A DNA stretch of 63,874 nt, filler included, from Choristocarpus tenellus KU-1152 (Eukaryota; Protista; Phaeophyceae), in NCBI GenBank assembly GCA_964200185.2. It is 9 parts of 9 records of this genome, joined end to end, with 100 filler letters (N's around TTAATTAATTAA, not from the genome) between each part and the next. Parts side by side here need not be neighbours in the genome. Positions count along the whole stretch, not along the records: positions 47,010 to 55,483 come from CAXNAD020004670.1; 8 more parts are not named here. The stretch is one strand, 5' to 3'. Shown piece by piece: positions 3,421 to 55,614 of the stretch (its first letter is position 1; each line of letters begins with the position of its first letter). The position numbers were made by a program, and so were the translations under genes. The notes beneath the pieces are model-generated. The model saw nothing but the letters and a program-made list of their open reading frames with translations. It did no database searches and was not told the DNA's origin.

Positions 3421-5880
3421 TTAGAGGGAAAGCAGGATCAAAGGTTTGAAGGTGTTGTACATGATGTTGTTGAGAGTAGGATGAGGTGACGGATGCAGGG
3501 TGTTGGACTTCAATGCGTTCTGCATGGTTGGGAGAGTTGTCCAAAGGGAAAGTTCATGAAGTAATCTGAGTTTTTGTGGGCGGAAGAAATTCTGGTTGGT
3601 TGGGGGGGGGGCACAGGGGAAGGGAGGGGGCAGGAAAGAAATACAAATTAGCAAGAAGGGAATGAAGAGTTAAATACGGAGTGGTTGAGAGGGAGGGGAG
3701 AAGTTAATAAAATGGTTGGCAGGTGGAGGCAGGAGTGGAGAAGGAATTGGACAGTATTGAATCGAAGAGGAACTGACAAGCTTTCCCACCCACCCGCCCT
3801 GTTGCTTGCTCATGACTGACTTGGATCTCAGGGTGGGACGGGAGGTTAAGTTCGGGCAGGGTAGATGTCTTCTAGATCAAGGCACAGTATGAAGGGGATG
3901 ATGAAGGGGCGTTCTTGGATGATTGAGGAGTGTTGTTGAGTGATGTGGGGTTGAAGGGTGTGGTAGTGACCTGAAAATCAGTGGCGAAAGGGGTTGCACT
4001 GGTTGGTCACAAGGGTTGATTGATAGAATGTGGGGAGGAAAGGGAATAGGGAGGAATGCAAACATAGAATTAAAAATAATAATAATCCAGACTTGGTGAG
4101 AAAAAAAAAAATAGGATTCCTGTCTATGGAAAGTGACATGGCTTAGTCAGGAGGACTTCAAAAGGACAAGCTCTCCTTCTCTAGGAGTTCCATTAGGAAT
4201 GCGAGATCACATTTACAAGAGGTTTCCACATGGTGGAGCTCATTGCCTGGGGTAGATAAGCAATTTGGTCAGACCAAACAAGTTCCACCGTGATAGATGT
4301 CTCTGACCCCAACAAATGCATGTAATTATTTTCCTGTCCTAAACTATGTGTGTCTCTGGTCAAAATCCTACCAAGTCAATGTTCGAGCACCTCTATCCCC
4401 ATTGTCTTCTGCCAGGATATCCTCCAAGAAAGCACTAGAACATTGGGAATCTTGATTTCACATTTCCACTGTTGAACCATGCCCAAATTACTGGTGATTT
4501 GACCAAGCCCAAATGAGGGAAAAATACTGGTCAAAATATCCGGCACACTACATAACATCAAACAGCAGAGCAATCCTATTGGGCGCTTCAAGTGACCTGC
4601 AATGATCTCCCCAAAAACAGTTGTACCAAAGTGTGTGTTCGACCTTAATATCCCAAAGATCTTCTCCGGGTCACCTGGGTCTGCTGCAGTCATGTTCCAG
4701 TCCATCTGCTCCACAGCAACAGCAATGCCAGCCAAAAAGGCCCATGACATGCTGGCCCCACTACCTTCCATTCCAAGCAGTTCAAGTGCCCCTACACCAA
4801 ACCTTGAAAGGACGGTCTTTGTCCTGCTACTGAAGAGCAGGGAGGTGGACTTGATGTCCAGTGTCTTTTAAAGCACGTTGTACACGATGGTCCAGCAGAC
4901 TCCTGGTCCATAGAGGGGCAATGTGTGTTGCCATGATACATCTCTATGGACTGCCGTCCAATCCATAAGGACCCCCCACCAGGAATGTTTGAGGCCAAAT
5001 TGTGAAGTACTTCATGAGGGAATAGGCCACCACGAGAGGCATTACTTTGAGTTCCATTTTGATCCACTCCATGCTCAGGTCCACAAGTAGTGCCAGCCTC
5101 ACCTTGAGTTCCCCATCAAGAAAAACTGAGGGCTTGGATTGTGCCAATCAATCCTGACGCGAGCGGGCATCCTTTCGTCCAGACCACATGTCGATCAAAG
5201 TCCTGGTCCCACAAGGGGTGTGTGTTTGAGTTAACTCTTACCATTAGGCCTTGTGCGGCAATTTTGGTAATACCCTAATCTTGGGTTTCAGGCAGCAGCA
5301 TGACGAATCTTCGATATGCTCATGTTATTCAGGTGTAAATAGGTTGCTACAGACACGCCCACCTCATCACCACAGTCACTTAAAAGTGACATGAGCCTAT
5401 GGTCCGACCAAGACCCAATTGGGGCGGCAAGGCCGATGCTCCACCAGCAGGGAGAGAGCAACAATAGTACACCGCAGCGGTCTTGTAGATCCTCACCAGA
5501 CGGCCATATGAACTCTAGAGTGGACCTATAAGTCTCAACACAAGTGGTACTGACAAGATGACCAACCTGTGATCTGCAATGCAATTGGTTATCCTTAATC
5601 GACGTCCATCCTCCATCTGGATGCACAATCTTGGCGGTACAGAATTGGCTCCAACTTGGACATGTAACAACTACATGTGAGCAACATGCCGCAGCCGAAG
5701 TCCTATCAATGCACGACCTTGACAACGATAGATGCTCAAATTGGTAACTACAACATTCGTGGAGCACATTGGTGGGTTCCACCTCTGGACCTCGTGACTG
5801 GTGTATATCTGAAGTGTTAGGCACCGAAAAGCAAGTCTAACCGACTGGGCAGGGTCGCAATGCCACGCCGTGTTGCACTT
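3421..5880 (-). other. Degenerate coding-like region, possibly a retroelement remnant (unassigned)
   Basis: Several broken, overlapping minus-strand ORFs (4376-4771, 4944-5147, 5288-5824) with no splice model and no motif I can recognise. Confidence 0.2.
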
Positions 5881-6171
5881 TGAATCAATAACTATTAGAT
5901 TCGATTGGTGTTTCTGTGTGATTTGGGTGTGAGTTATTTCTTCATTATTGGTTGACAAATGGACCACCTTACAGATCTGCGCGCGGCGCGCTTTCCATGT
6001 ACTGTCACGTTGACTTGACCTCACAGTGTGGGCAAATTGTGCCCCCTATTCTATCTTGAGGATTGTGGTAGGAGGCATAAGTTGCAGGTATTGCCCTTTT
6101 GGGCAACGCCAGGACCCCCTGCGCCCGACGGGGCAGGTGGGCTGCAAGGGGCCATCGGGGCCGATAGGGGG

Positions 6172-8610
6172 ATGACTGAGTTCATTGTGGGTCAGAGGGT
6201 GCGAGTCCGTCCTCGAGTAGGTGATGCACAGGAGGGGGTAGTGTATACCTTGGATTCTGCCACAAACACGCTCACTATTAAACAGGAAATTCCGCATACG
6301 ACAACTCACTGCTCCATCCTCGTCTTTAATCGGAGCTTTATCGAGGTCGATGCGATAGGAGGGGATGAAGGTGGTATTGACCCTGATGTCGCACTCCCTA
6401 GCGTTAGGTGAGAGAAGGAAGCAGCTGATTGGAACTCACTAGGGGAAAGTATGTATTCTTATGCATACCAGCATTTTGTTGACCATATGTTGCGGAGATG
6501 TAAGTACAAGAAGAAACTGGTAGGAGCTAGATTTCCACACGACTACCTCGCTCTTTCCTTGCTATTGCGGAAGCTAGGGGGTGGCAATGGCAGGGCAGAA
6601 CACACACCTGCTCACAGGATCCAAAGGGGAGAATGTGTGCCTCAATCATGAAACTTGCCTTCTCCGTCAACCCATAGCGCTAGGATGGCTCCAACGTCCA
6701 CCTACTTCAAAGATCACTTGATTTCTGTATACCCTCTCTTCTCACGCCCCCCCCCGCTAAATTTCTGTCCATGGAAAAGTATTAGCTGCTTCTGGCAAGG
6801 AAATCCCATTCAAATAGTTACAGATATTGTCTTGGTTTGGATTATCTTCTCGCGTCACGTTATTCAGGGTTGTGTCTTTGGTCACATCAGTCTGTAGGCA
6901 GGCACTTCCAAACCAGGGCCTTCAAGCAAACACCAATCCTTTGTTTCCGCCTCATATCGCCTCCCCACTCCTGATTACATTTTCGTCTCAATTCACCCCG
7001 CCACCCCTTCCCTTCCAACGTCGACAGTGAGCAGGATCTTGAACGAAAAGAAGCAAGGGCGGTGAAGGATGCCGCAAAAGCATGGGCACAGATAAATGGG
7101 AATGCCAGCAAAGCGGGTCAGACATTATTTGATGCCTTTGCAAAGACGTGAGTGTAACTTTATCAAATGTCGGCTTCTTCCTGTGTGGTCTTGATTCGGG
7201 CCTGATACTGAATGCACGAGGCCAGAAATATCCAACGGATGACACTTCCATATTCCCCAGTATGCACCTTTCAGATTTCTTGGAGAGGGTCTACGCTGGG
7301 ATGAATGGGAATGATAGCATTGTATCTTCAACTGTATGGTTACTTCTGTCGTGTGTTGCGGATGATCTGTAAAATTGATGACCGTATCCTTTTCATGCAA
7401 AGCTTCGATACTTTATCCTGCCGCATTCGATTGGTTCACTGGTTGATCTGAATCCTTGTATATCACATTGCAAACTTGCCGTGTATTGATGTCACCAGTT
7501 CCAGACAGTAGCCGACATCTCCTTACTTGAACTTAATGCTTTCCACCTCTTACTTGATTTTACGGAATCTGTGGTGTTCTTCCAATACCCTTAGCATGCC
7601 AGGTTTATAAAGATACTTTGTTTTTTCTTCATTTTTTACCTTCTTAGTATGCCCACTGTCAAGTTTGGTTTTCCGTTTATCATTTCCACAGGTAAAGTGT
7701 CCTATGTAATCCTAAAAGATTCCACTGTCTTTAGTCCATTGTATCTTGGCAGATTGGACACGTAGGAGTGGCCTACATGATCCCAACAAGGGACCCTCAA
7801 GATTTTTCCCCAAAAATCCTTCCCCCTCCCGCCTTACTCCTCCCTTTGTATTTGTTGAACCCCCTGTGTGTTTTGTGCCCTACCAAATCCATGGTGGATT
7901 GCACAGGTTGGAGTGTGAGTGGGACAGAGAGAGTATTGTTGTGCTGGGTTCTGTCAAGATAAATCCACCCTACCAGCCATCAAGCTGTAGTAGTTTGGAT
8001 GGCGACAAGCAGGGGATGGACAGAGTACTACTCATGGTGAGTGCACATCAGGTCGATCCATAGTCATCAGCATTTGGGGGTGGGGGGAGACGAATCTTGA
8101 TTCAAGGTAGATGATACTTCTGACAGAAGTCATCATTTGATGTGATGTTCAACATAGGTTGTGCTGTATTTTGTATTGATTGTATTAATTCCCACCTTTT
8201 CTCATGGGGTTGCATGTCAGAGAGTTACAATGCTCTGATTATGTTTTGTTCGAAGAGCGGCTTACTCTTTGCTGTGTAATAATTGATAACAAATTCTCAC
8301 CGACTTTTTGATCAGCTCTTTTAATTTCATGTTGATTCCATACTACAGACTGCATACACTATGGTGGAAATAGATATGGGTGCACTTATCCCATCAGTCA
8401 AAATTTGTTGCTTCAAATGTCCTCACCACTGCTGTTTTGTCTGAGCGAAGTTGGGCTTAGGACAACAGATCTGCTGCACCCCTCACACCACCCTTCTTTA
8501 CTTAGTACCTCCAGGCCAAAGGAAGGAGCCTGAATGCAGTTATTACTTCCCACACTGTCCTCCTCGTCCCCAATTACTGGCAGCTGAGGAAGTTCCAGGA
8601 ACTTCTGTAG
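6172..8610 (+). CDS. LSM12: LSM12-like protein (N-terminal Lsm fold plus anticodon-binding AD domain), 4 exons
   Basis: Exons 6172-6407, 7028-7147, 7907-8036 and 8584-8610 have GT-AG boundaries and consistent phases. They join to MTEFIVGQRVRVR..EGVVYTLDSATNTLTIK..LPSVS/EQDLERKEARAVK..INGNASKAGQTLFDAFAKT/LECEWDRESIVVLGSVKINPPY..DRVLLM/LRKFQELL*. The motif 'GQ.LF.A..KT..C.W....IVV...V.I.PPY' is the AD-domain signature. Confidence 0.9.
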
Positions 8611-11600
8611 TTCAACAGGTTTAGATTGGAGGGACCACAAGAGGCACCGAGAGAGAGCCATTACCACGCATCACACTCAGAGTCTCCTCCATACAAGGAG
8701 GGCAGACTACATGAAAGGGAATGAAGGGTGGGGGGGGGGTCAAGGGGAACAGCGAGCGAGTCTCATTGGCACACAGCATCGCTTTGTATGTACATGTGGT
8801 CACTATATAGGTGGACTGAAGACCATAGGAGGGGATGCTTTGGATTAACGTAAGTAGGGTGTGGTGTGGTCCTGAGGATGCTGACATAGTGACAACAGGA
8901 ACAGAGAAGAAGGAAGAGGCTGTGGGGGGACTGGCTGCTTGGTTTGAGCTGACATGTTCTAAGAATACGTAAGTGTCTTGAATTGCCCTGTGAAGAGTTG
9001 TAGTTCTTGTCTTTTGAGTGTGTATTGCTGAGTGATTGAAGAATGAAAGTGAGTGTTCTTTACCACCTCTGGTTGTTTGTTGGAAAGGTCTAGCTTCTTG
9101 AATATATTGGGCAGTTGTGTCTTGTGGTAAGAGAAACTGGACTTGTCCGGAGTATGTGGGACATGATTCTTAAAGTAAAGCACCAAAGTATCCTAAGAAC
9201 CCTGGACACAAGGTATGACTCCCTGTGTCTCTAATAGTTAACGTCCTTGCTCTGCTGCACAAGTGTTCTCATCTCTGGACCTTGTGGTTAGATCAATTTC
9301 TCAGCCACATTTACTTGCTGTGTGAACACATGGCACAAAAGAGCAGTGAGGGATATGAAAAAAGATTAATAGCAATAATAAATAGTACGGAAAGAATAAT
9401 TAGGGGCTCGATTCAGAACTTGCGCTACAAATTGTTCTGAACATCTTGAAATGTTCTCCAACCTAGCTCCTTTGCTTCAGCATTGTGTATACGGTTTGAT
9501 TTCTACATGTTTGTGGGCCGGGCCCCCTTGCCTCAATGAAAGCACTGGAGAGTTTAACCGCTCCATTCATCCTTTGGTTGAAACATTTTGTTGGATTGAG
9601 GGAATTTGTGTAAGGTCTAGTCACACATCTGGCACCACTTCTACTTATACTGTACGGTAAAGGTTTTGGGTAGTAAGTTACCGAGTATGCACTGTTGTTT
9701 CCCATCTCTCAACACTTCTTAGTTACATTTGCATATTTTTCAGGGTGTCAACTGTTGAGTTGTAAGCATTCTATCACTGGCCGAGAACTTCAAATATCAG
9801 GACAACAGGCATGAAATAGTTGGCTTTCGATGTACACAAATAGTGTACTTCAATGAATCAAAAATATGTATACTTTTGATATGATGTTAATAGTATTCTG
9901 ACCCTAGCCTACGACTATCCCTACTAAACAGTGTGCAGCTACTACATGAAATATTTAAGTGAGATTGAAAAATGTATAAATGGGTGCCGATATGCAGTTG
10001 TGTTCCTCAGCTGCAAAAACCTTTCCAGCAACATAAGGACTTTTCATGAAGAGAGAGATTCTTTTTTTCTAGTTTGAACATGAACTCTTATATGATGGTC
10101 TACCTGATAGTTAGATTTGAAATGCCTTGTCTTGACATTTTGATTGACAAAATACATGGAAAGTCCTGGAGGATGAGCTTAAAGTGCTATTTTAGTAGAA
10201 AGTATTGCTTTTTCAGTCATAGATCATCTTGCGCTCAGATAATAAACAAAATATACTTCAAAAACAGTCCTAGGTAAGACGTAGCTCCCTTTTTGCTCTT
10301 CACAAATCAGCATAGCAAATATGCAGCAATGCATAATGGAAGATTTGGTTGACCATTAATAATAAAAAAAAAACAGTAGCCACAAAAAGTCCAGAAACAC
10401 TGCTCTGACCATCACTGGTTCTCACATCAGTATTAATAGTTGTGATGTGTTCCAAAGGAAAGACTGCAACATAGCAAAGCAAAGCTATCATTTACGGGAT
10501 TTATAATTTCTTGTCATCACACTGGAAAGATGAACATACAGTCTCTAAGATCCTGGAGATGGATGGGCGGCATCAATCACGCACACCTCTACCCTCCTTC
10601 CTGCTCCATGGCAGGTACAACCCCAAGCTCAGCACCTCAGGTGATTGAGGGGATACTTGTTGTGGGGCCCCCAGCCTCAGTGCATTTGGAGGCGACAGGG
10701 TAATGTAGGAGAATGTTGTGTATTGTTCAAAATTTATGGCACTGTCATTGCATTGCACCCACCTCGTCAAAATAGAATCAACCGATGTCAACAGAGATAA
10801 ATACTACACTGTCCTCAAGAAATTGTTTCAATTTGTCAGACCAATATTTCATGGATTTTAACAGCTTCACACCTCACTTCATATTAAAAAAAATGACCAG
10901 ACCTACATCAAAACCAACACTCTCGCGCCGATGATTTTGTGGCACTCGGCCTATACCCCATTTTTGGAGCGATCTTTTACATACTTGAACCATAACAATA
11001 ACAGTACTAGAACTAAAGAAATGTCCAGCATTTCAGGAACAAAGATACTTCCCCCTCCAAAACTCTTAACGTAAATGTGCTGTGCCTGTGCGTGCTTGCT
11101 CCAGAATAGAAGATAATAGGGAAATTGAAGTAAACACTCCAAAGTAGGTATGTTGACTGGCACTAGAGGATTCTTGTATATTTGTGCTACTGAGTCAGTA
11201 TGATGCGTTTCGCCTGCACTGCTCCCTACTCCTGAGATACTGGAATTATTGTCACTGTATAAATATTTTGGAAATGACCACAAGCAACATATGTGCTGTA
11301 GAATGGTATCCATTAAGACAAGATGACTTAGATTGAAAGTAGGAGATATCCTTAGTCTGAAGGCACCCTTTCCAATCACTATGTGGTGTGAACAAAGAGA
11401 CACATTGTACCATAAACTACTGTGAACACTACCTCCAAGAGGAGAGAGAGGTAGAATGCCATAATTTGATGGGTAAGTTAACGCCACAGATAAAAGACAA
11501 AACCTTAGCATATTGCACTTCCAAGCAAGACATTTTGCTCAAGCACAAAGCACTGTATCATCATAGTGGTGATGTGCAGCACAACTACAGAATAGTGAAT

Positions 11601-11724
11601 AGTAACCTATTGATACTGCTCAATATATTATCCACTGCCCCCCATGTCTTCCATTGTAATGATAGCATGTCGAAATTCAAAATTCAGAAATACCTTCTAA
11701 TAAGTGCTACTGTCGAAGACTAAT

Positions 11725-14295
11725 TCATGGGGCATATTGTGCTATATCAACCTGTTGGTCATACAGTTCCACCTGCTCCCGGAATACCCGCATGAGCACA
11801 TCCATCTCTTGTGAAAGGTCTTCTATTGCTGCTGAGAGCGCATCCACCGGTGTGTTATCCCCATTCGTCTGAACCTGGGAGGGTTCATTAATGTTGAGAG
11901 GGTGGGGACAGGGGTGAATTTGTTCGGAGCCATTCCTAGAAAAACACACTACTCTTGACTGTTCTTGGAACAGGGTGGCCAGGGAAAAGATCATAAGGAT
12001 CTATATCACCGCCTAGTCCTTCGGCAGAAGTGTTCACTTACTTGACCATCTACTAACACGTTCTAATGTCTACAGGAGTGCAGGTTTGACCCCTACTTCT
12101 CATGCATATTCAAAAGATTCAAGCATTGCGCCGTGAAGAGAGTATCAGCCAATATTCCACGGGGCTACTCAATAAGTCATTAAACTGATACATGCAGCAT
12201 AGCCCCAAACCATCATGAAGCTGCCCTGTGGTATAAGCAAAACCTTTACTGTACAAGGGCTTTCAAATGGAGTCATAGAGTGACCAATTTACATGAACCT
12301 TCATTGCGCCTGTGTCCCCATACGCCCGTAATTCAAAAAGGGGCAGGTAGAGCATACTCTGGTCATTGATCCTACATGAGAGGTGGCAAGCAGGCCTACT
12401 TGTATAGAGCGGTTTGGGTGTGAAGATCTGCAATTCAAAGTTGATTGTGATCATTCACGTCTCAACACATCTCCCTCCCATCCCGCCAACCTTGTCCTCT
12501 GACCTTGACGTGAATTTTGTTTTCCAAAGGGTGTGGCTGTACATATCCTGCAAATCGCACCTGCTTGTCCTGCAGCAGTTGCCTGAACACAGAACAACAC
12601 CCCAAAAATGATTACCACAAATAGGTTGGGACGGATTCTATTTGAGGGTGGGAGGTATCAGGATGGCACATGGCGGAAATTCCGGTCAGGAGAGCATCTT
12701 TCATTGAGCAGACTCCATCCCCTCACTAAAACAATCCAACCAAGAGGTTCCCACAAAAGGTGATAGTTACGGAAACATGCATTTCCGTAACTGTAATCAA
12801 ATCAGACACTTTTAATGGGATCGAACAGAGAAGGTCCAGATAGTTTGCCGGTGTGTAGCAGATGAGACATCTGCATAGAAGAGATGTCTCCCCATTCTCC
12901 CCCATTGTGATCATGTCGAATATAATACCAAAGATAACCGTCATTGGTTCACCATAGCCGTTTCCCTCCCCCAAAATCTAACACCTTTGTAAAGTTAACC
13001 ATCTGAATTAAGCACCTTACTCTAGTCTCAATGTGTATCATTTTCACACAAATCCAGTCAATCTATGATATACATGGATTCGGGCTAGTAAAACTGAAGT
13101 ACACCAAACCCCAGTGCATGTACAGACATTGATGCAAACATTGACAATAGACACATCTGTATTGGACACAAGAAAGCCCTTGACCAATTGATTTACATGG
13201 CTTGTCATGATCATTTCTTCAGGACCAAAGAATAGTCAGATATAAACTGTCCCTTTACAACCCCCCTGTCCTTAGTTGGAAGCTCTACTTCCACAACCAC
13301 ATACCCAGCAAGGTGTGATCTATAAGATGCGTAGGTACAAGGAAGGGCAAAGGAACTAGCAAGCCAGGCTTGGATTCCGAGGAGAGAAACCTCTAAACAG
13401 CACATTTCTTGCTACAGGTAAGGAAATGGTGGGGACCAGTGAGTACTGTGCTGTATCAGAATCAAGGTTTGAAAGGTGAAGATATTGGCGACAGGGAAAT
13501 GATACTGGTTCTATATTCAACTCTCTCCCTCTTACATACGTAGAAGATTCCCCAGGGTGTGATCCTCCTTGATGATCTCGAAGGTTCCTGCGTGAGGGAT
13601 CTTTGTGTCTGGACTATAGGCAAGTCTGTCATTGATTGGTGAAGGGATGGGATAGAAGGGCGTATCAATGACTTGGGCTGAGGCGAGGAGAATTTGATCC
13701 CTACGAGCACAAGAACCAAACCTTGCCATAGGTTCAGGCCATGAACCCGGAAGGTTATGCCTATGAAATCCAATTTGTCCTCAATTCAACTACCACCTTG
13801 ACGTCCTCCGACTTCCTCCCCCTCCCTCCGAACGCAGTAGCATGTCTTCCACCGCTAGAAGCAGGAATGAATTTCTAAAAGCAGGACTCACAATCGACCT
13901 CTAGCTGCAATCCAACACACAATTCAAGCTTTTGAAGCTCAGGGGAGTACGGGATGTGTGAGTAATCCAAGGCTCGGTAACCCTTGGGTGCTCACTTTTT
14001 CTCGTCATCGTTGAGTCGCCATGCCTCAGACCTGCGAGGTAGATAGGGTTGTGGAAACACAGGTTTGAGAAGGTAAGGTAAGGGATCTTACTTGCTTTGG
14101 TGCTCAAGTGATTGAGGTGAAATAGATAGAGGGAAAGGTAGGACGGTACACAAATCTATGGCCGTGATGCAGTCTTTGAGTGAGACTTTAAATAGAAGGA
14201 AGGTCGTAGAAAAGGGGGTGCCGGCAGTGACTACACGAAAAAATCAATTCGTGTCTTTGTCCACATCCAATTTTATACCTCTCTGGAGCGTTCAT
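11725..14295 (-). CDS. RPB11: RNA polymerase II subunit RPB11, 5 exons
   Basis: Exons 14295-14279, 14031-13996, 13625-13536, 12582-12504 and 11874-11725 give MNAPERSEAWRLNDDEKKLAYSPDTKIPHAGTFEIIKEDHTLGNLLRMQLLQDKQVRFAGYVQPHPLENKIHVKVQTNGDNTPVDALSAAIEDL..*. The EDHTLGN and FAGY..PHPL motifs are diagnostic. Confidence 0.96.
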
Positions 14296-14759
14296 CGGGC
14301 CCTTGGGATAAAATGCTAAGGTCCTTAGCCCTTTTCAGATATCCTTATTTTTTGGCGTAAGCTAAACCAGAGCCACACGAGCTGCCTCCCAACGTCACCC
14401 TCCACAGTCGAGGATGTTGAGGAGGTATTGAGAACGTTATATCTGTTGAAGCACCACCTACCACACCTGATACTTAAGTTTTTCTAAACCCTTTTATACG
14501 TTCAGAATATGTTTTTCGTACTACAACACTCAATATAGACAGCAACTCTCAAAAATACAGGTGTACCTTTTTTGTTTAATATCAATATTTAAGTGGTCTC
14601 TTTCCACAAGCGTTTTTGTCGCTTCCATCTTCACACTTCACAAAAAAAATATGGGGGAATGTTGAAACATTGTATAGGATATTAAAATAATTTACTATCA
14701 GAAAGTCTTATCTATCACCCCATGTTCTACCTTCATTATTACCAAATGTGATTAAATAT

Positions 14760-14980
14760 ATAATATTATGATGCCCTGACATTTTCGAGATGTGTCAGGG
14801 GGAACACCAATGAAAACTATTCATATGTCAGTCTAAGGAAATAAAATATTTTACAAATCAATAGAGAAATCAACCCTCTCATATCAATGTCAATCTTAGA
14901 AATACAGATGAATCACAGAAGATTAAAAAGTGGCTTAAAATGCAAAACGACCCAAACCTGGATACCTCTCGTTTGCTTTG
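14760..14980. repeat. Dispersed hairpin-containing repeat. Other copies at 21226-21520, 20465-20560 and 60020-60125
   Basis: CCCTGACA-N11-TGTCAGGG hairpin followed by G..ACCAATGAAAACTAT.CATATGTC..CTAA.GAAATAAAAT. The 14760 and 21226 copies also share ..TGGCTTAAA.TGCAAAACG..CAAA.CTGG.TACCTCTC. Confidence 0.75.
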
Positions 14981-15405
14981 GCTGAGATGAAGAAACCCAA
15001 TGATCAAATGACAATAGGAAGTATGTAAATTAAACGAAATTTCCGTTCATATGTGCCTCCTCACATTCTCATTGTGCACATACACAAGTGTATATTCCTC
15101 GTCATTTCGAACCATGAATTGTGGAAGAGTGTAACTTTTCCTTCAATATGTTGCACCCATTTTCATTGATTAAACGAAACAGCCCAATGAAAGAAAAAGT
15201 TGGGTTTGTAGAACGCGTAGTGGACATAAGTCGGACATGCAAGGGAAAAGGTTAGACAGGTCAGTGGACATGGACTGGTACAATACCCAGTGAACAAGGT
15301 CCGGATATGTCAGAATGTTTGACCTGATGTGCCCATTGGACGGAACTTTCTTGATTTACCAGTCTAGCCAAAAGCCCTGATTTTTTTTGCTAATGAAAAA
15401 GCTTA

Positions 15406-45624: not shown

Positions 45625-47109
45625 GCACGTACTGATAATTGGAGGAGACGGTCGGGAAATCAAGAGTGGAAACTACCGTCTCCAAGGATGTATACGAAAT
45701 AAAATGGGTGATTCCTGTTCAAATCTGAATCAACCAATCCGAACCGACCTGAATGCAATAACCTCCTTTGTAAACACAAAACAAACACACTAAGGCAACC
45801 ACTTTCTACTCTAGATAACACTGCTTGCTGGTGGCTGCGGCCTTTCTTAGCTTGACCCTCGGATGCAAAACAGAGACCGCACTACCGAATAGAGCGCACC
45901 GTCAGCCAGCAAGATCTTGACGTCGGCCTCTCTGTAAACCCCTTGCTGGAGGACCGTGCAAAGGAATCATCCGAGCCTACTGTTCGGGCCAGGTTGTCGG
46001 AAAAAATCACAGGGCGTTCAGGGTTGCCCCTACCATGCAGGAAATAAGAGCAAAGGGGCATGGAGTGTTCTGATTAAAGGAGAAAACTGTAGAACGGTGG
46101 GAAGATAGCATTGGCAAAGGTTGAATATTGATTCATACGGTTGGCCCCGGCTACAGTGTGATAGTTCTTACGCCTCCATTAGCTTTCACCTTCCATTTCC
46201 AGCCATGGTCCCACAGTCTGGCAACCCTTCACGTGTCTTACGGGTTCTCTCCAAAATGTATTTTTTGAAGTCTTGTTCCATCAGTACGAGGTTATGTTTG
46301 CCTGTTTTTCATATAACTCAGGTGTTTATCCGTCCCAATCCCATTGTGGTAGATCTTGGATCGAATCCTGAATGAGAAGTCTACACTTCCTGAAGGGGAA
46401 TTTTATTTCCGTTTTTCACCTAACTAACATTAACTTATACTTCATCTGTTCGGAATTAAATGTAATATAACTTTTTGCACATATTATTTTTATGGGTATA
46501 TTATGTAGGCAGTAAAAGGTTGCCCACTGAAATCTCAAGTAAAATGGGAAGGTCTACACCTATCTATGATTCGAGTACTTTGAAGTATTTTTTATTATTT
46601 AGTCAATATGATGTCATATAGAGGTCATAAATGTGGCTTGTTCAGTCCTACTTATACACCCCAATTCAAGGCGCTAAAGTGAAAAATTGCAGCGAGAGAT
46701 CCACCATATCTGACGACATTTAATTGTATGGAGCCTTCTACGAGTCTCATCATTCGCCTACAGGCTTGTGGATTGGAACTACATATCCCATCATGGTAAG
46801 CTTGCGGACCGTTTTGTAACATTGGAGGTCCTACCTTGTCTCTTAAAACCAGAGAGAATACTCAGCTTAATGCATCAGTGTCAAAGTATCTGGGGGGGGG
46901 GGTCGGCATNNNNNNNNNNNNNNNNNNNNNNNNNNNNNNNNNNNNNNNNNNNNTTAATTAATTAANNNNNNNNNNNNNNNNNNNNNNNNNNNNNNNNNNN
47001 NNNNNNNNNCCCTTCTTGATGCTCCCCTTGTTTTTTCTTGTCGTGGTTGCTTTCCCCCCCCCCCCCCCCCCCCCCGCCACACACATGAAAGCTTGCTTTT
47101 GAGCTCCAG

Positions 47110-47493
47110 CAGAGCCTGCAGCACCTTGTGGCAGGAGACAAGGGTCTACTGGCCAAGGCACGTGCCGCATTCCAGAGTCATGTCCGAGCCTATGCTGCGA
47201 GGGCTCCAGACAGTCGTGCAGTGTTTCAAGTGCGTTCCCTGCACCTTGGTCATGTTGCACGCAGCTTTGCGCTGAAGGACCCCCCAACCGCAGTTAAGGT
47301 TGGCAAAAAGATTGTCCGTCGCCCTGGGGCCAGTGCCAGAACCGGTTCCAGGGCTGGGAGTGGAGGTGGGAGGGAGGGAGGAAGTAGGGTTGAAAAGAGG
47401 AAGCGGGATGGAGCCAGAGGCGGGGGGGGAGGCATCCGTAGGCTCGGGTTGAGCAAAAAGATTGAGCGATTTTCACGTGCTGAGTTCTTGTAG
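47110..47493 (+). CDS. DDX31: Final exon of DEAD-box RNA helicase DDX31/DBP7 (DUF4217/CTE domain), 5' part outside the contig
   Basis: LLAKARAAFQSHVRAYA..VFQVRSLHLGHVARSFALKDPP followed by a basic tail ending in EF. A pyrimidine tract and CAG acceptor precede it. Confidence 0.85.
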   Translation, partial: QSLQHLVAGDKGLLAKARAAFQSHVRAYAARAPDSRAVFQVRSLHLGHVARSFALKDPPTAVKVGKKIVRRPGASARTGSRAGSGGGREGGSRVEKRKRDGARGGGGGIRRLGLSKKIERFSRAEFL

Positions 47494-50400
47494 ATTTTTT
47501 TTTTCTTTGTTCTCCCTCCCTTTGATGCCCTTAGCGTATCTTTTAATGCCCGTATGGTCCAAACTTTTGCTGATTTTGAATGTTTGGGATGTCTTTACCA
47601 TTACACTCCCTGCGATGTTTTGTGCTGACCCTCACATCTGGTTGATGTTAAGTTGCCAGGATGTTTGTTTGCTTCCGGTGCCCAATACCAGTGCTGGGTT
47701 TTGTCTACTTGCTCTGGAGCACTTGTAGGTTGACTTCATATGCAGTGTATATTAGATCGACGAGCTTAGGAAGAGATTTGTGTTGCTGGGGTAGGTGACA
47801 AGGGTCGAGTGTATGTCATTTCTGTTTGTAGGTGACCTGGCTGACGTATTGTCGGGAATATTGGCATGTGATGTCTTTGTGACACAATGGATGCATGTAT
47901 AAATTATTCGTGTAGATGTAGTAGCATGCTCTTCGAAGTGTCCGGGGTATAGTCCTTGATTAGTGTGACTATTCCGTTGCAGAGGATGCAGGCTCTTGCT
48001 TGCCTCTGCCGCTATGAATTTCTTCCATTGGTTTTTTCTTGTATTTGCTGCTGAAGTGGGTCGTATAGTGCACTCATGTGTTGAGAATTTCATAGCACAG
48101 CATATCGGCTCTTTTTAGTGGCCCTTCCGTCCAATTTGTCAGTGGCCAGACAATTTTGACTACAAAGTAGAGATTGCCACCGAGTACATGTTGGGATGTT
48201 GGTATGGCGGAGCAAGGTGCTATTTTTACTGCTGATGTGCAAATATGCCACTGACGGTATAACTTTAGTGTGTCACATCATCATCGGTTTCTTTTTCATG
48301 CATACTGTACCACCAACCCCACTATCTCTACCCTTCCCTTCCGCGTAACAGGTTGATGTTGAGAAACTACGGAAGAAAATGTAACTTTGTTTTTTAATTA
48401 GTCTAAGGCCCGGGTAAAGGTAGAGCACAGGAAATGTATGTACCAGAGCCTATGTTTCCTCTGGAGTGAGCTCAGTGTGTTTGGCAGTGTTAATCCCAAG
48501 TTGTTGATGCATTGTTCAACAGCTCCTGGTGTGTGTGTGTGTGTGTGTTTGAATGGAATGCTGTGCTGGTTAATGCAGGTGAGTTGCCCATGGCTAGATG
48601 CCAAGTTGAGGGGTCAAAAATAGTAATTCCTTCCTTCAAGAAAAAATATAGAGACGACAGTCCGTCAACAAAAGCCATCAAGACTAAAGCACAAACTAAT
48701 GGCCCTGTGCAAGAACTTGGGATAAATAAGGTAGTCAAGGACGTACTCGAGATAGGGAGTGCTAGGTATTGCATAATGTGGTCCTTGACAGAAGGGACAA
48801 GGGACTAAAGAGACGGCTCGTCCCATTGACCCTAACTGCCTGTGAGTAGTGGTCTGTTGATGGGGATATATTGGCAGTATAATATACTATGTGATAGACT
48901 TTGATCTTGACTAGACTGTGCTGCATGCAGTGTTCAGCCCAACCAAAATTGATGCTCATTTTACAGTTTCTCAGAGTGTGCAGTATGATACAACAGGATG
49001 GAAGAGCATGGCAGAGGAATATGTAGCAAGATGGGATGGATGGTGAACCCATGCACCTTGTCGAAAACGAGAGCAGGAGTGAAAGGTGATGACAATAACA
49101 AGTGCCATTTTTCTTCTGGCAGTTGATGTCAACTTTGCACCTGGAAGACAGGGAGTGGATTGTTGACCGTCACAACAGATGAAGCTCTGATAGAAGTTTT
49201 CTTATTTGTTGTGGCCAACTGTCGACAGTGAACGAGAGAGTGTGCATGAAGTACTAGTAACTGCTCTATGTCGTACTTCACCAAGCACCACATAGGCCAT
49301 ATTTTAACAGTCTTTCATTATACTCCCTTTCACAATAGGATAACAGACAATGAATGGATAAAGAGGCTATCCTATGTTAGAGGGGAGCCTATTTAAGCCC
49401 TTTGGAGTAATGAAGAACTCTTCGAGCCTTCTCCCTGACATCCCATTCCCATGAAGGAAATTCATGGTTACCAAGCTTTTAAAGAGACACTCTGGTGCCT
49501 GTAGAAGAGTATCCAAACTTTAGTCTACAAAATTAGTGTGGTGTTGAGAACCAAAATTGATGGTTAAAGTTGTATCACCTAGAAATTTGCAATTAATTCC
49601 ATTGTGTAGCTGTCAGCACACAAGGCGAGAAATACTCTGGAGTATATAGCACTCCAAGGCAGAAGGCCCCCTACCTGGTGAGGGACCCTGCTGTAGGCGA
49701 AAAATTTACTTAAGACTCCTTGTGCTCTTTGTCCATCACCAGAAGCATGGTATACTGCACTAAGAATAGTGGAGACAGGCTATTGCTCATGTTTTTGCTC
49801 AAGGAAGGCTGAAGAATATGTTCCCCAAGGGTTGACTGAATGAACAACGGTGGATTTACCATGATAATAATTATAAACTCTATTACACACAGAATACTTG
49901 GGATGTATACAAACAAGAGAACAAAAGACGACCAAAACATGTATGTACAGCTTACAACTTTTGAGAAGTTCACAATACAATAATCGATGAACAGAACAGC
50001 AAGACACCTCGGCAAAATAGAAAATAAAAAATAACAGAATCAACCAACTGTTCCCTTTGTGATCTAGGTCATTTCTCAACCATTAATTGACTGAGTCAAC
50101 TAAACTGTTGCAGTTCATAACACTAAAAATTGCCGTTCAGAGTGCTAGAAGCACATGCACTACTCCGAACATGTCAAAGGCAGTCACAGGGGCCCCAAAC
50201 ACCCAATTGCACCCCCCTCATTTGACAGCATAGCTCAAACCAATCGCTTTTTTCAAGTTGATCAACGATGTGTTTGACCTTCTATCTTGCGCAAGCAATA
50301 GAGGAAGAGGAGTGGGTTGATGGTTGCCTAGATCTAGCAAATGAGCTCTGTGCATCCTGGAATGGCACTGCCCCAGAAGTCTGGATGTCTAAAACAACCC

Positions 50401-50937
50401 TGCTGTGCCGTCCCTATCCACCACTCCAACCAATATTACATACAGTAGTAAATGCATTAATCTTTAGGGAAAATAGAATGCAAAATGAAATCGCGATATT
50501 TGCAACCTGGTGCTAAGAATCTACAGCATAGGGAATAGCCTAAACCTATTCATCCTCCTCCTGCATAGAGTACAGGGATCTTTACAACTTCATTCTTGCT
50601 GACTTGTGTACTGTTGAAAACACCGTACATCTAAGTTCTTCCAGTCGAGTTGATCCCCACAGCCCAAGCAAGTAACCATATAATGAGCAAGGAGGAGGAG
50701 GGACTCCTCCCTCCAACAGTAGGATGTAGTATCAGCACATGGGTTGTCTGACCCTCCAGGAAGAGGTCAAGAAACATTTAAGAAGACAGAAGGATTTCTA
50801 TCCCAATTTCAAGGGGCACTGCACACTGTGCTGCCTGCAGAGAGCCTAAAGCACCTGAGCATCCACTGTGGGAGAGCGGCTGTGGAAAACAGGAGGGAAG
50901 CATGCCCAGGAGCACATTTTGTCATCTGACAACATAC

Positions 50938-53900
50938 CTCCCTGGCTCCTCGCTGCCTCCTCTTAAATACTTGGACTCAATCAGTCCAATTGTCTGTTGG
51001 CAGAGGAGGCAGACGAAATGGAGGTAGGGCAAGGGAGCGCTGCGGTGAGACTGAGCAGGATGATCGATGACAACACTAAGTTAGTAGGATAAATACAGTT
51101 TTATGTGGCCCCTAACTTGTGGTCCTATTCAGGTGTTCTGTGCTTCAGCAAAAGGGGGGTGAGGGACTTACTGTGTTGGATATCATGAATAGTACACACG
51201 GGGAGAGGAAGGGAAAGGGTCTTTTGTTCTAGCTAGAAGGGTAGCAGCACTGTAACAGCTTATTGAGATAGACAAAGAAAGTAGCCTTCATTGAGACACC
51301 TAACGAACACCCTTTTCATGCTGCATTCCCAAGCATACTGTATCCCTACCCTCACCCCTCCCCCTCAATTCCCTTGATTGTCAATCACTGAACACCCACC
51401 TCTCCCTCATCAGAGTCGGACAAGGCCTCATCATCTGTCATCCCATACTCAATCCTGGGCACTACCATCAGGTCTGTGGTAGATGGTGCGAAAAACGCCA
51501 AAGCACCCCGTCCAACACCAGCGCTGCCCCCCGTCCCCTGTCCCTCCCGAGAGTTGAGGGCAGACCTCCCCACCATCAACGACAATGGTGCTACTCTGCT
51601 GGCCCTGTGAGCAGCTCTGATACCACCAGTAGGGCTCCCCAGGGAGGACAGACCAAGTGCCGATGAGACCTCAGCCTCTGTTAATCCTGATTCGTCTGCT
51701 TCTCCGCCATCTGGTTCAATGGGCACCGCTAGCAACCCTTCCCAACCACTTTGGTCAAGACCATCACCCTCAAAATCCACCGGCAATCGAAGTGTCTGAG
51801 TTGTCGGGTCTCCTTCTGCATCAGAATCCCATGGTGCCACAACAACTGCTGCTGGTGGCATCGGCTGTGACTGCGGCACTGATGGTTGTGAAGACGCAGT
51901 TTCAAATGGCATTCTCCTGTGTTGTCCCATGCCCTGCAATTGAGGATGACTGTCCACTTCCTGATGTGCAGAGGGAGAAGACCCAGGAGGCACTTGGAAG
52001 TTTCCAGTGTATTCTTCCTCTTCAGCTGATGTGTTCTGAATACCACTCCCATGGCCTTGGCTACCATCCCCTTCAGCCTTGTCTTTGCCACTGGCACCCA
52101 TACTCTGCGCTTCAAGTGACTGTGCACTCCCAGAGAGTCCACTTACTCCTCGGAGTTTTTTGCCCATAATCGTTGTCGCTCCTGCATGAGTTAGGACTGG
52201 ACTCCGCACATCTTCCTCATATTTGTTTCCATTTACACCCACTCCGTCACCATCCACTGCATCCTTGTCCTCAGTTGACCCAACTCCCTGTCTCCCTCCA
52301 GACAAACGGACCCCTGACTCATCTCCTCCTACATCAGGCCAAAAGAAGCTGGTATTTGTTCCGGCATCGGCTGTGTACCTAGCACTCACAGTCTTGGCAA
52401 AAGAGCTGTGGTCTAGGGCAGGCGGTGCTTGATAGACGGCATTCACTGTAGAGGTGCCCCCTGCCTTGGCTGTAAGTACTGGGGAGCCTGGTGTTGGGAA
52501 GTCATGGTTTTGGGAAGGGGCACCATGGGGTGAAGGTAGGGAAGCTGGGGCCCCAGCCATTGGAGTAGAGCCAGAGGTATTGGCAGTAGATGCATGAAGC
52601 ACAGCCTGCAAATTACGCAACTGCTCTGAAAGGTGAGCGAGCTGGCGCTGTTGTTCTACAAGAAATGCCCTGGCCTCAGGACTCAGGCCCCCCAGATGAA
52701 CTCCATTAGGGAGAGATGATGCACAAGGTTCCAACACCTGTTTGTCTGGAGTTGCCCGGGGCGGGGTGGGGGTGGCAGAGACAGCAATATCGGCAAGTGA
52801 CATAGAGTCCGTTGCCATCAAAGGAGGAGTTGGATACGAGTGGGCCTGGCTCGGATGATAGCCTGAGATACCCGCTCTATTCAGTGGAGATGAAATCTGC
52901 ATTGTAGAACCCTTCTCCCTGGTGAATTCATTCTGCTGCTTATGCACATGCCCACACCCATCCAACTGACTCTGACTCATCTGACCCTGGTTATCCTTTC
53001 CAAAATCCCTCCCTTCAGATACAAATCTCTCGTCTTGAGGCTGCCGCTGCAATCCCCCTGCCCTGCCCCCATCCTGCTCCCCTCGCCCCACCAATCCGTG
53101 CTCAATATCACTCTGAGTCCTCTCCCGATAGTCATTCTTAGCGTGTGTTGAACCCAGCAATTGCATTGCATACTCGGCATCCTGCTTTAGGACTTGAGGG
53201 GTCACACGTTTTTGAGTGTATTTCTCCCGAGGGCCTGCAGAGGTGGCCATATCAGCCTGTGCTTCATCAAGAGATGACTGCAGGCTTACTCGCAGGTCAG
53301 TGATGTCTTCTTCAACTTCAGGTAGAGGTGTAATTGTCCCAATGTCAGACTGGGGTCTGCTCACACTACTTGCTCGGCTTTTGGGAAGTGGTTCGCGACG
53401 TTGCTGAGGGGAAGGAACAACTGCCCTGGTCCTGAGAGGAAGCTGAGGTAGGGATGAGGTGGGCCACATGCAACCAAAAAAGGCAGTAACAAGGAGTGAA
53501 GGGGTTGGGAAGGTGTTAAGCTGGACTCCTAGCAATGATGATTCCAGCTGGGGCAATACAGGATTTGTGTAATGAATGGGAGTCTAGTGCGGAGGAGCTT
53601 ACAGTTAGTCATTTTAAGGCAACTTAAGTTTGTCATACAAACAGGTACATGTGTCCCTCACCTTTGTGGGCGGTGTTGGTGCCTGGGTCGGCGTTGGTTG
53701 CTGGTGGGGAACTGGAGTGTGCTGCTCTTCCTCCCAGGCGTCTCTGACTGGGTTGTTGTAGTGCCGATGATACCTGTTGGTGTTGCTGGGGTTGCTGACA
53801 GGCCTGGCCTCTCCTGACTCCAGTGCCATCTTTAGGGGAAGACCTCGGGTAGTCCCCCTGCCTCAAGATAAAATAGGGAAAGGGGTGTGTGTGTGGTCGG

Positions 53901-55062
53901 AGGTCAGAGATGAATTGAACAGACAGAAACTCAAAATAAACCAAGTTGCTGGGGGGGGGGGGTTCACTTCCCATACCTTTTTTCCTCGCTCTAGAATTAA
54001 GTCTAGCTCCGTGTCTGCTCCCTCCACTTCTGTTCTCAATTTCTTTTCAGTGGTCAAACCCATCTCCCAATCCAATAATCACTACCGCTGGCATATAATG
54101 AACCAGGAAAACATTGTCAGGTCTGCGGCAGGAAGGAGTGCCAAACAACCACTGTAGTAAGCCCTGCCCCCGCTGTCAGCCAACAAACACTCAAAACACA
54201 AGAGAAAATAATAAGGATTTCTCTATAGCTTGACATACAGATATTCCTGCCCTGCAGCCTCTGTAGCGGTGGTGAAACATACCTTCTTGGGTGTCCTGCA
54301 CGACTGAATGGTCCAGCAAATACAGAATTGGACACTGGGCGGAACTGCCCCACCACTGCAACCCGGTCACCGCCTCCCTCACTCATTTTGTAATCATTGC
54401 CGCCACCACCGCCACCACCGCCACCACCGCCACCACGAACTGCTCTTCCCCTGAGCCCAGCTTTGACCTTCCCCCCCGATCTCATCCCTGGTCTGGCCAC
54501 TGATTTTGTCTCCCCAACAACTACATCTGCGGAGAAATCCAAAAGCATGAATTTTGTCTTGACAGCAGAACTGGTTTGACTTGAAGATTCTTCTGTGCCA
54601 AAACCCACACTGCTGTTGCTGCCGCTGCTACCTCCATAATATCTGTCAGAATACTGACTCGCCTCATATAGCAACGGCATTCTCTTCCCCATTGCGTCTG
54701 CTGCATCAACACCCTCTTCAGCGTCAGGGAGGTGCAGAACCAGGAAGGTGGAGGGGGGCACTCCAGCAGCTCTGACTGCCCGCAACCGTGCCTCACTGCT
54801 TAGTAAGAAGCGAAGGCAAGCAGGGTATAGGTATGGGTGATGGCGAGTTCCACTGTTGATGACCCCCGGAGCAGTATTTGGAGCACCTCCTCTCCCATGC
54901 CCACTCCTGCTCTCACCATTGCTGTTACCCACATTTTCCTCTGTCTTGTTGCTTTCAGCTTTCCCACCAGACAGCCAGACGCCAACAATGGGGGTCTTGG
55001 AGGAGAGTGGATCTCCATCTGAAAGCAAGACTGCACGCCTTCCCTCATTCAGGGAAAGGAGA
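50938..55062 (-). CDS. STIL: STIL/SAS-5/Ana2-like centriole assembly protein (5' partial, final exon uncertain)
   Basis: Exons 55062-54283, 53857-53662, 53442-51400 and 50993-50938 are phase-consistent. They encode a STIL_N-like block (LLSLNEGRRAVLLSDGDPLSSKTPIVGVWLSG..HPYLYPACLRFL..FLVLH), a coiled coil (LSPEARAFLVEQQRQLAHLSEQLRNLQ) and a C-terminal VPRIEY..IGLIESKYL. Confidence 0.78.
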
Positions 55063-55614
55063 CTGGCAGAGAGAGGCACAGCAGAAGGTCACGACCCACA
55101 AGTGTGAAGTTTGCCCACCAAGCGGTTTGCCGAAGAATTTGACAGAGAGGCCAACAAGGTGAAGAGGTCAATATGTAGTGAGGAATTTCATGAGGGGTGG
55201 AATTGATTGAAATTGAAAGAGGTGTGGATGTATAGTGGAAGGTTCAGGCTAAACAGCAACGGCAATGTGCTGATTCGCGCAACCTCTGGACTGAGGAATG
55301 GTGGATACCAACCAACACAAGTAACTGTGGGAATAGAAAATGTCGTACAGAAGAGAGAGTATTTCACGCTTTTGCCTGTTGCGGAGTCTCTACCCCCACC
55401 CATTTTGCTGAGTATCCCTCCCAACTCCCAAGATTCTTCAGAAACAAGAACGTCGGAAGTCATGCCAACCTTTGAAGGGGGGGNNNNNNNNNNNNNNNNN
55501 NNNNNNNNNNNNNNNNNNNNNNNNNNNTTAATTAATTAANNNNNNNNNNNNNNNNNNNNNNNNNNNNNNNNNNNNNNNNNNNNGAATCCCCCCCCCCCCC
55601 CCCCCTGAAAATAG

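Follow-up and report, generated by a model that had tools for sequence, protein, structure and literature searches.

Is STIL, the centriole-assembly scaffold that goes by the names Ana2 and SAS-5 in Drosophila and C. elegans, an animal protein, or is it older than the animals? The question is raised by a gene in a 63,874-nucleotide window of DNA, filler included, from the brown alga Choristocarpus tenellus KU-1152 (assembly GCA_964200185.2; nine records joined end to end). The gene lies on the minus strand of one of these records, CAXNAD020004670.1. The initial annotation of the window saw in it four blocks in the order of vertebrate STIL: an N-domain, a CPAP-binding motif, a central coiled coil, and the first half of the STAN motif. 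We find that the gene is very probably a member of the STIL family, and we put at about 0.62 the probability that it is the ochrophyte (brown-alga-like) orthologue of the STIL/Ana2/SAS-5 centriole-assembly scaffold, with its 5' end missing. The N-domain and the coiled coil carry this assignment. STIL is said to have been first reported, by Carvalho-Santos et al. and by Hodges et al. in 2010, as confined to animals, and reviews still describe STIL/Ana2/SAS-5 chiefly from animals.

The N-domain lies in the first exon visible:

54283–55062, minus strand: exon A, 259 full codons, borders from transcript-like contigs; it holds the C-terminal half of subdomain 2 of the STIL N-domain, a low-complexity stretch, and then an Ectocarpus-like conserved block, DRVAVVGQFRPVSNSVFAGPFSRA
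54963–55061, minus strand: core STIL_N motif LLSLNEGRRAVLLSDGDPLSSKTPIVGVWLSG, which aligns with residues 217–247 of tuatara STIL and 234–263 of Trichoplax STIL
54798–54845, minus strand: second STIL_N motif HHPYLYPACLRFLL, which aligns with residues 267–284 of Trichoplax STIL (HHPYVWSACMRYLYS)

Protein searches were made exon by exon. The Pfam STIL_N model (PF15253) matches residues 2–33 of exon A with its positions 205–236 of 404 (E 4e-4, 19.8 bits), and BLASTP places the exon on tuatara STIL at 217–247, where it is expected to fall, with an E of 4e-5. The top match of exon A in the PDB is 5oi9_A, to which it aligns in two collinear stretches—residues 3–32 on 234–263, and HHPYLYPACLRFLLS on 267–284—that are split in exon A by a 40-residue low-complexity insert. 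The N-domain of Trichoplax STIL, solved in 5OI9 and 5OID, has MPN-like subdomains in tandem and binds CEP85 (PMC5928214). The columns of the second motif are kept in stramenopiles, Amoebophrya, sequences of the haptophyte group, and tuatara. An AlphaFold model of exon A, built with a 21-sequence alignment and confident solely for residues 1–33 and 70–140, superposes in VIA-align on residues 229–314 of 5oid_A with a Z of 7.6 and a root mean square deviation of 2.5 Å over 85 residues; the next structural group comprises MPN domains such as CSN6, at a Z of about 5. Foldseek with the same model ranked 5oid first, yet not significantly (E 1.6), and nothing usable came out of searching the protein atlas with exon A. 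The profile, PDB and tuatara matches take the resemblance of this block to the STIL N-domain beyond chance, and for the part present, the second MPN-like half, the identification is established.

When the first 200 residues of exon A were compared with 1.84 billion representative proteins, nine matched at E ≤ 1e-3: the contig's own open reading frame (P0001), Ectocarpus-like fragments, partial proteins of Ectocarpus fasciculatus, Pythium oligandrum TMW62908.1, and Amoebophrya CAD7959978.1. STIL_N is the sole Pfam match in eight of the nine, and it passes the model's threshold in Ectocarpus (34 bits), the unnamed fragment P0006 (80), Pythium (69), and Amoebophrya (53); haptophyte relatives likewise pass. 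The top matches are Ectocarpus, which bears out the stramenopile origin that had been proposed for the DNA. The closest of them (P0004) is 51% identical to the exon A piece, with an E of 2.7e-10. The Ectocarpus fasciculatus entries CAN0286921.1 and CAM9527758.1 share with the present gene the coiled-coil string LSPEAR..F..QQRQL and, where the N-domain region closes, the block RAVVIARLRRVS. They are partial and unnamed, and they hold the N-terminal half that is missing here but not the C-terminus; the Ectocarpus orthologue carries an N-terminal FP.S+.ALW start motif. Oomycete proteins (Pythium oligandrum TMW62908.1, Phytophthora species, Hyaloperonospora) have the same layout of STIL_N, coiled coil (ILENQQxQL), and terminal PRIK[FY]-SDSEDEE-IRxIExKY, but their N-domains are just ~26–32% identical to the algal one, and at ~950 residues they are shorter and less disordered than the algal protein.

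That the gene should be unexpected outside animals, as was first supposed, does not hold. Oomycete homologues have already been named automatically in UniProt and NCBI as 'STIL N-terminal domain-containing protein', 'SCL-interrupting locus protein-like', or 'SCL-interrupting locus', and so has a homologue in the haptophyte Chrysochromulina tobinii. Our literature search turned up no publication dealing with STIL in stramenopiles. According to a 2020 review, Toxoplasma has no STIL homologue (PMC7750520), and a 2023 paper notes that STIL, which diverges fast, is often missed in orthology inference (PMC10425847). No animal STIL came up in word-index searches when the query was the Amoebophrya N-domain or an alignment of oomycete, Amoebophrya, and Ectocarpus sequences, whereas a haptophyte-group query did retrieve one (Sphenodon, P0054). 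Since the family assignment already stands in automatic annotation, the advance offered here is one of interpretation rather than discovery.

Two further sets of relatives turned up. One is a locus in a 477-kb contig (ENA ERZ26962164, positions 5194–15150; L001 hereafter), the nearest genomic relative, complete and collinear, with the N-terminal exons and the same exon order, which could supply the full gene structure of the STIL-like family; it and a second, near-identical contig of the same assembly (L002) are probably haplotypes. The other is a marine-metagenome group of STIL_N proteins 670–810 residues long (P0043–P0053, P0055), one cluster of which includes Chrysochromulina tobinii KOO25038.1. 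In these, poly-Asp comes after [VIM]P[RK]IxY, and the terminal KY stretch is missing from most of them. The core of their N-domain (GYLTMDQTRR..ESDPK..PLVGVWVSG) is nearer to vertebrate STIL than the stramenopile core is.

The coiled coil, and a shorter motif that follows it, are found far downstream in a long exon:

51400–53442, minus strand: exon C, 681 codons, mostly disordered, open in frame, and covered without joints by contigs of run X3, the transcript evidence; it holds the coiled coil, the post-coil motif, and a PRIEY-acidic block
52594–52695, minus strand: short central coiled coil LGGLSPEARAFLVEQQRQLAHLSEQLRNLQAVLH, residues 250–283 of exon C, with 3-4-3-4 leucine spacing
52333–52371, minus strand: post-coil motif ..AGTNTSFFWPD.., kept in L001 as TNTSFVW (L001 13109–13144)

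Starting some 500 residues after the N-domain, the coiled coil comprises four heptads with the STIL signature LSPxAxxFLxEQxRQLxxLxxQ. It is the top high-scoring segment pair of the 681-residue exon C against the 1318-residue tuatara STIL (725–753, E 0.013), and it falls there in the region, 731–758, that Pfam annotates as CC_STIL. A profile (A4) made from exon C, L001, Ectocarpus, four oomycete-group proteins, and three Amoebophrya proteins, with QQ.QL as its invariant columns, finds one match in the whole of tuatara STIL, at 726–755, with an E of 0.0019. Human STIL coiled-coil peptides (8oyk, 8oyl, and 4yyp) rank third, fourth, and sixth in a PDB search, with E values of 0.3–0.65 over the whole PDB. 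The central coiled coil recognized in the initial annotation is real, and the sequence support for its being of the STIL type is modest but consistent. Approximately 80 residues beyond it sits TNTSFFW, which resembles AVNTS[IV]Q of Amoebophrya; the top hhalign match of the post-coil motif in tuatara STIL is AVSTGASLFW at 799–810, weak at E 0.26.

The end of the protein is formed by two conserved elements:

51400–51474, minus strand: C-terminal block DLMVVPRIEYGMTDDEALSDSDEGE, a PRIxY motif with an acidic, serine-rich run; 73% identity in L001
50925–50993, minus strand: coding part of exon D, 23 codons, TIGLIESKYLRGGSEEPGRYVVR, followed by a TGA stop at 50922–50924 and by a 3' untranslated region that continues below 50922

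Stramenopiles, Amoebophrya, and the haptophyte-related group share a terminal module in which a hydrophobic residue and P[RK]IxY are followed by an acidic, serine-rich run, I..IE.KY, and the end of the protein. In the present gene the module reads VPRIEYGMTDDEALSDSDEGE and TIGLIESKYL, with the last intron between them; their counterparts in L001, VPRIEFGQLTDDELGSDLDEGE and TIWRIESKYLKGG, also lie in separate exons, and exon D is 77% identical there. PRIxY is common to oomycetes, Amoebophrya, and haptophyte-group sequences. The STAN motif of animal STIL, ~90 residues long, binds SAS-6 (PMC2819680). A profile of the family's KY stretch has as its top match in tuatara STIL EANAIALKYLSESQL at 1076–1090, the start of STAN, and a pairwise comparison with Amoebophrya falls on the same place, with a weak E of 0.12. 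That IGLIESKYL corresponds to the beginning of STAN is suggestive only. An alternative mapping, of PRIxY onto the beginning of STAN (IPELNY in tuatara), was rejected: hhalign picks instead the non-collinear RIQYSP, at 613–618.

Taken together, the top matches of four independent blocks are collinear on tuatara STIL, at 217–247, 726–755, 799–810, and 1076–1090, and two of the four lie within regions that Pfam annotates in that protein. Compared with vertebrate STIL (Sphenodon punctatus A0A8D0H2X8, 1318 residues, and human), the algal protein is similar in overall size and shares, in the same order, the STIL_N motifs, the central coiled coil (LSxDAxxxLTEQDRQL), the weak AVSTGASLFW-like motif after the coil, and an EANAIALKYL-like stretch near the C-terminus. 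It differs in the long low-complexity inserts of its N-domain and in its PRIxY-acidic block, for which STIL has no collinear counterpart. In Ana2 of Drosophila and SAS-5 of C. elegans, a central coiled coil and a C-terminal SAS-6-binding region represent the minimal design of the family (PMC2819680). In layout, the algal protein resembles that design. Neither Ana2 nor SAS-5, to our knowledge, has an STIL_N domain.

Much can be said on the other side, and the following points weigh against our identification of the gene as the orthologue of a centriole scaffold. Half of the N-domain is not visible, the contig holding the C-terminal part of subdomain 2, and exon A's own STIL_N score of 19.8 bits lies under the Pfam threshold of 27. 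Of the STIL_N profile search proposed in the initial annotation, then, the E value and the scores of the relatives speak for the family, but the bit score of exon A itself falls short. The Pfam CC_STIL model (PF25775) matches neither the exons nor the isolated coiled-coil segment; for exons B, C, and D, as for the coiled coil and the C-terminus scanned as separate segments, Pfam yields nothing beyond generic coiled-coil noise, and exon B has no Pfam match. The match of the KY profile to STAN is weak (E 0.082 on the whole of tuatara STIL, 0.032 on its C-terminal quarter) and covers ~15 of ~90 residues, and exon D alone yields no alignment to tuatara STIL. The protein stops 14 residues after KYL. 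No more than the opening part of STAN can therefore be present, and the second half, with the main PLK4 sites of animals, is absent, as are the animal PLK4 phosphosites, the TIM motif, and the KEN box; exons A–D contain no KEN string.

Nor was the CPAP-binding PRxxPxP motif (PRPIPSP/CR2 in vertebrate STIL) found by BLASTP with tuatara STIL, among PDB peptides, or by comparison with L001. The initial annotation had assigned this role to RAVVPSPQQ..ITPLPEV, a likeness that proves no better than chance: the string has no segment pair with tuatara STIL, matches no STIL or Ana2 peptide in the PDB, and is not conserved in L001, where the alignment is confined to the coiled coil, the region after it, and the C-terminal blocks. 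The conserved block at the end of exon A was considered as an alternative CR2 and rejected, at E 0.63. The animal order of domains that had been claimed for the gene thus stands for the N-domain and the coiled coil, and weakly for KYL at the start of STAN, but not for the CPAP block.

The last of the opposing points comes from organisms without flagella. Downy mildews without zoospores—Hyaloperonospora arabidopsidis, H. brassicae, Peronospora species, Bremia, and Peronosclerospora (P0013, P0014, P0021, P0025, P0027, P0028, P0037)—keep full-length copies of the gene, in which the coiled coil and the C-terminal module are intact. Because flagellum-less downy mildews retain the gene, a strictly centriolar reading is weakened, and their copies present a concrete puzzle: either centrioles are still built in these organisms, or the protein does something else there. 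A true STIL_N-family protein whose main role in stramenopiles is not centriole or basal-body assembly but, say, that of some other cell-cycle or mitotic scaffold, with the links to SAS-6 and CPAP added later or lost, would fit the conservation of these copies, the missing CPAP-binding motif, and the stub-like STAN with neither TIM nor KEN. It would also fit H. arabidopsidis, which is reported to be without all of the centriole-associated proteins surveyed (Judelson et al., PMC3471859). The same authors give it as unknown whether that species has centrioles, and an unknown is not a negative; equal retention in centriole-less lineages, which had been named as grounds for abandoning the idea of a centriolar STIL, is found in part. 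Most oomycetes do use centrioles in mitosis (PMC3471859), and in these retention of the gene is to be expected. Outside the N-domain, moreover, conservation is highest in the coiled coil and in the STAN-core stretch, both of which serve centriole work in animal STIL. We regard a non-centriolar main role as unlikely, though it deserves to be taken seriously.

A centriolar function for the STIL-like protein has, by analogy, a moderate probability. If it works as animal STIL does, the N-domain would dock it on a centriolar partner and the coiled coil would oligomerise it. The acidic, phosphorylatable tail and the KY(L) stretch might then engage the coiled coil of SAS-6, and in this way initiate the cartwheel at the duplication of centrioles or basal bodies. 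The activating kinase is probably not PLK4, which is described as restricted to opisthokonts; the half of STAN that carries the main animal PLK4 sites is absent.

Far less needs to be said for chance, in which an unrelated and largely disordered protein would happen to contain short STIL-like strings. Exon A does score below the Pfam threshold, and the CR2 and KYL likenesses alone are not significant. Against this stand two collinear N-domain motifs with a structural superposition, a chain of intermediates, from Ectocarpus and the oomycetes to Amoebophrya and the haptophyte group, all of which pass STIL_N, and a coiled coil that is the single best match of exon C to STIL. We consider chance very improbable.

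The integrity of the gene itself can be judged from sequencing runs. The parts not yet listed are these:

47010–55483: source contig, 8474 bp, with the gene on its minus strand
54400–54436, minus strand: fourfold repeat of CCGCCACCA within exon A, a run of 13 glycines, detected by tandem repeat finder
53858–54282, minus strand: intron A/B, 425 nt, GT..AG with donor GTATGT; an X3 contig skips it from 53857/8 to 54281/2
53662–53857, minus strand: exon B, 65 codons and one base of a split codon, a proline/glutamine-rich linker
53443–53661, minus strand: intron B/C, 219 nt, GT..AG, skipped in an X3 contig
50994–51399, minus strand: intron C/D, 406 nt, GT..AG, skipped in an X3 contig

The stretch is present in three public runs of one study, which we compared over 50900–55483. 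Run X1 gives one colinear genomic contig. X3 behaves quite differently: its depth is zero over 51053–51358, 53501–53653, 53960–54265, and 55184–55483, and the three gaps that its contigs skip all end in CT..AC on the plus strand, which is GT..AG on the strand of the gene. One X3 contig (record 13) joins exons A, B, and C, and another joins C and D. We take X3 to be RNA from this splice pattern, the run type not being on record. The contig joints, together with frames that are open and phase-consistent across exons A–D, confirm the gene coordinates and splice phases given earlier. A third X3 contig spans 54757–55063 and then continues for 27 nt that are absent from the piece. At least one further exon must therefore lie upstream of the contig end, and the 5' part of the gene is missing from the piece. 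Read in frame, the extension ends in ..VVPQSG before LLSLNEGRR; at the same point the Ectocarpus relative has ..KLQSGFVTLNEGRR (..KLQSG). The visible protein amounts to ~1030 residues, to which the missing N-terminus must be added. This is a single spliced gene, and its splice pattern in X3 shows it to be expressed.

That the exons belong to separate genes, or that the locus is a pseudogene, is the least probable explanation of all: no single contig spans the poly-Gly repeat (54397–54441), where all the short-read contigs break, or the small gaps within exon C, yet the reading frame is continuous at the repeat, contigs join A+B+C, C+D, and A to the upstream exon, and L001 has the same order of exons.

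Three differences were seen between the runs: C>T at 54675, which is synonymous; C>T at 52947, which changes Val166 of exon C to Met; and a 2-bp deletion at 51118, in the last intron. They look like alleles or strains.

A brown-alga-like orthologue of the centriole scaffold that retains the coiled coil and, weakly, the beginning of STAN, with relatives in oomycetes, Amoebophrya, and haptophytes, would support an old origin for this cartwheel factor. Tentatively, and at somewhat less than even odds, we suggest that STIL is not an animal invention: that the scaffold goes back at least to the ancestor which animals share with stramenopiles, alveolates, and haptophytes, and that it had an ancient core and a PLK4-independent switch, to which animals later added. 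The ancient core would then comprise the N-domain, the FLxxQQxQL coiled coil, and a C-terminal acidic run with a KY(L) at the very end of the protein. Animals would have gained the CPAP-binding motif, STAN's second half, TIM, and KEN later, and the protist form would display the minimal element that engages SAS-6, along with a way of being switched on without PLK4. The conserved elements form a short, testable list. Brown algae keep centrioles in their vegetative cells and in their zoids, and genetic tools exist for them, so the function of the gene could be tested there.

At the other end of the contig, on the plus strand at 47128–47493, a DEAD-box RNA helicase gene convergent with the STIL-like gene is represented by its last exon (Pfam CTE_SPB4, 59.5 bits), its earlier exons lying beyond the contig's left edge. 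Scans of the piece for tRNA genes and Rfam families were empty. Between the two convergent genes, from 47500 to 50900, is an AT-richer spacer of ~3.4 kb (39–45% GC) with no long open reading frame. Part of it must be 3' untranslated region, because an X3 contig reaches down to ~50774.

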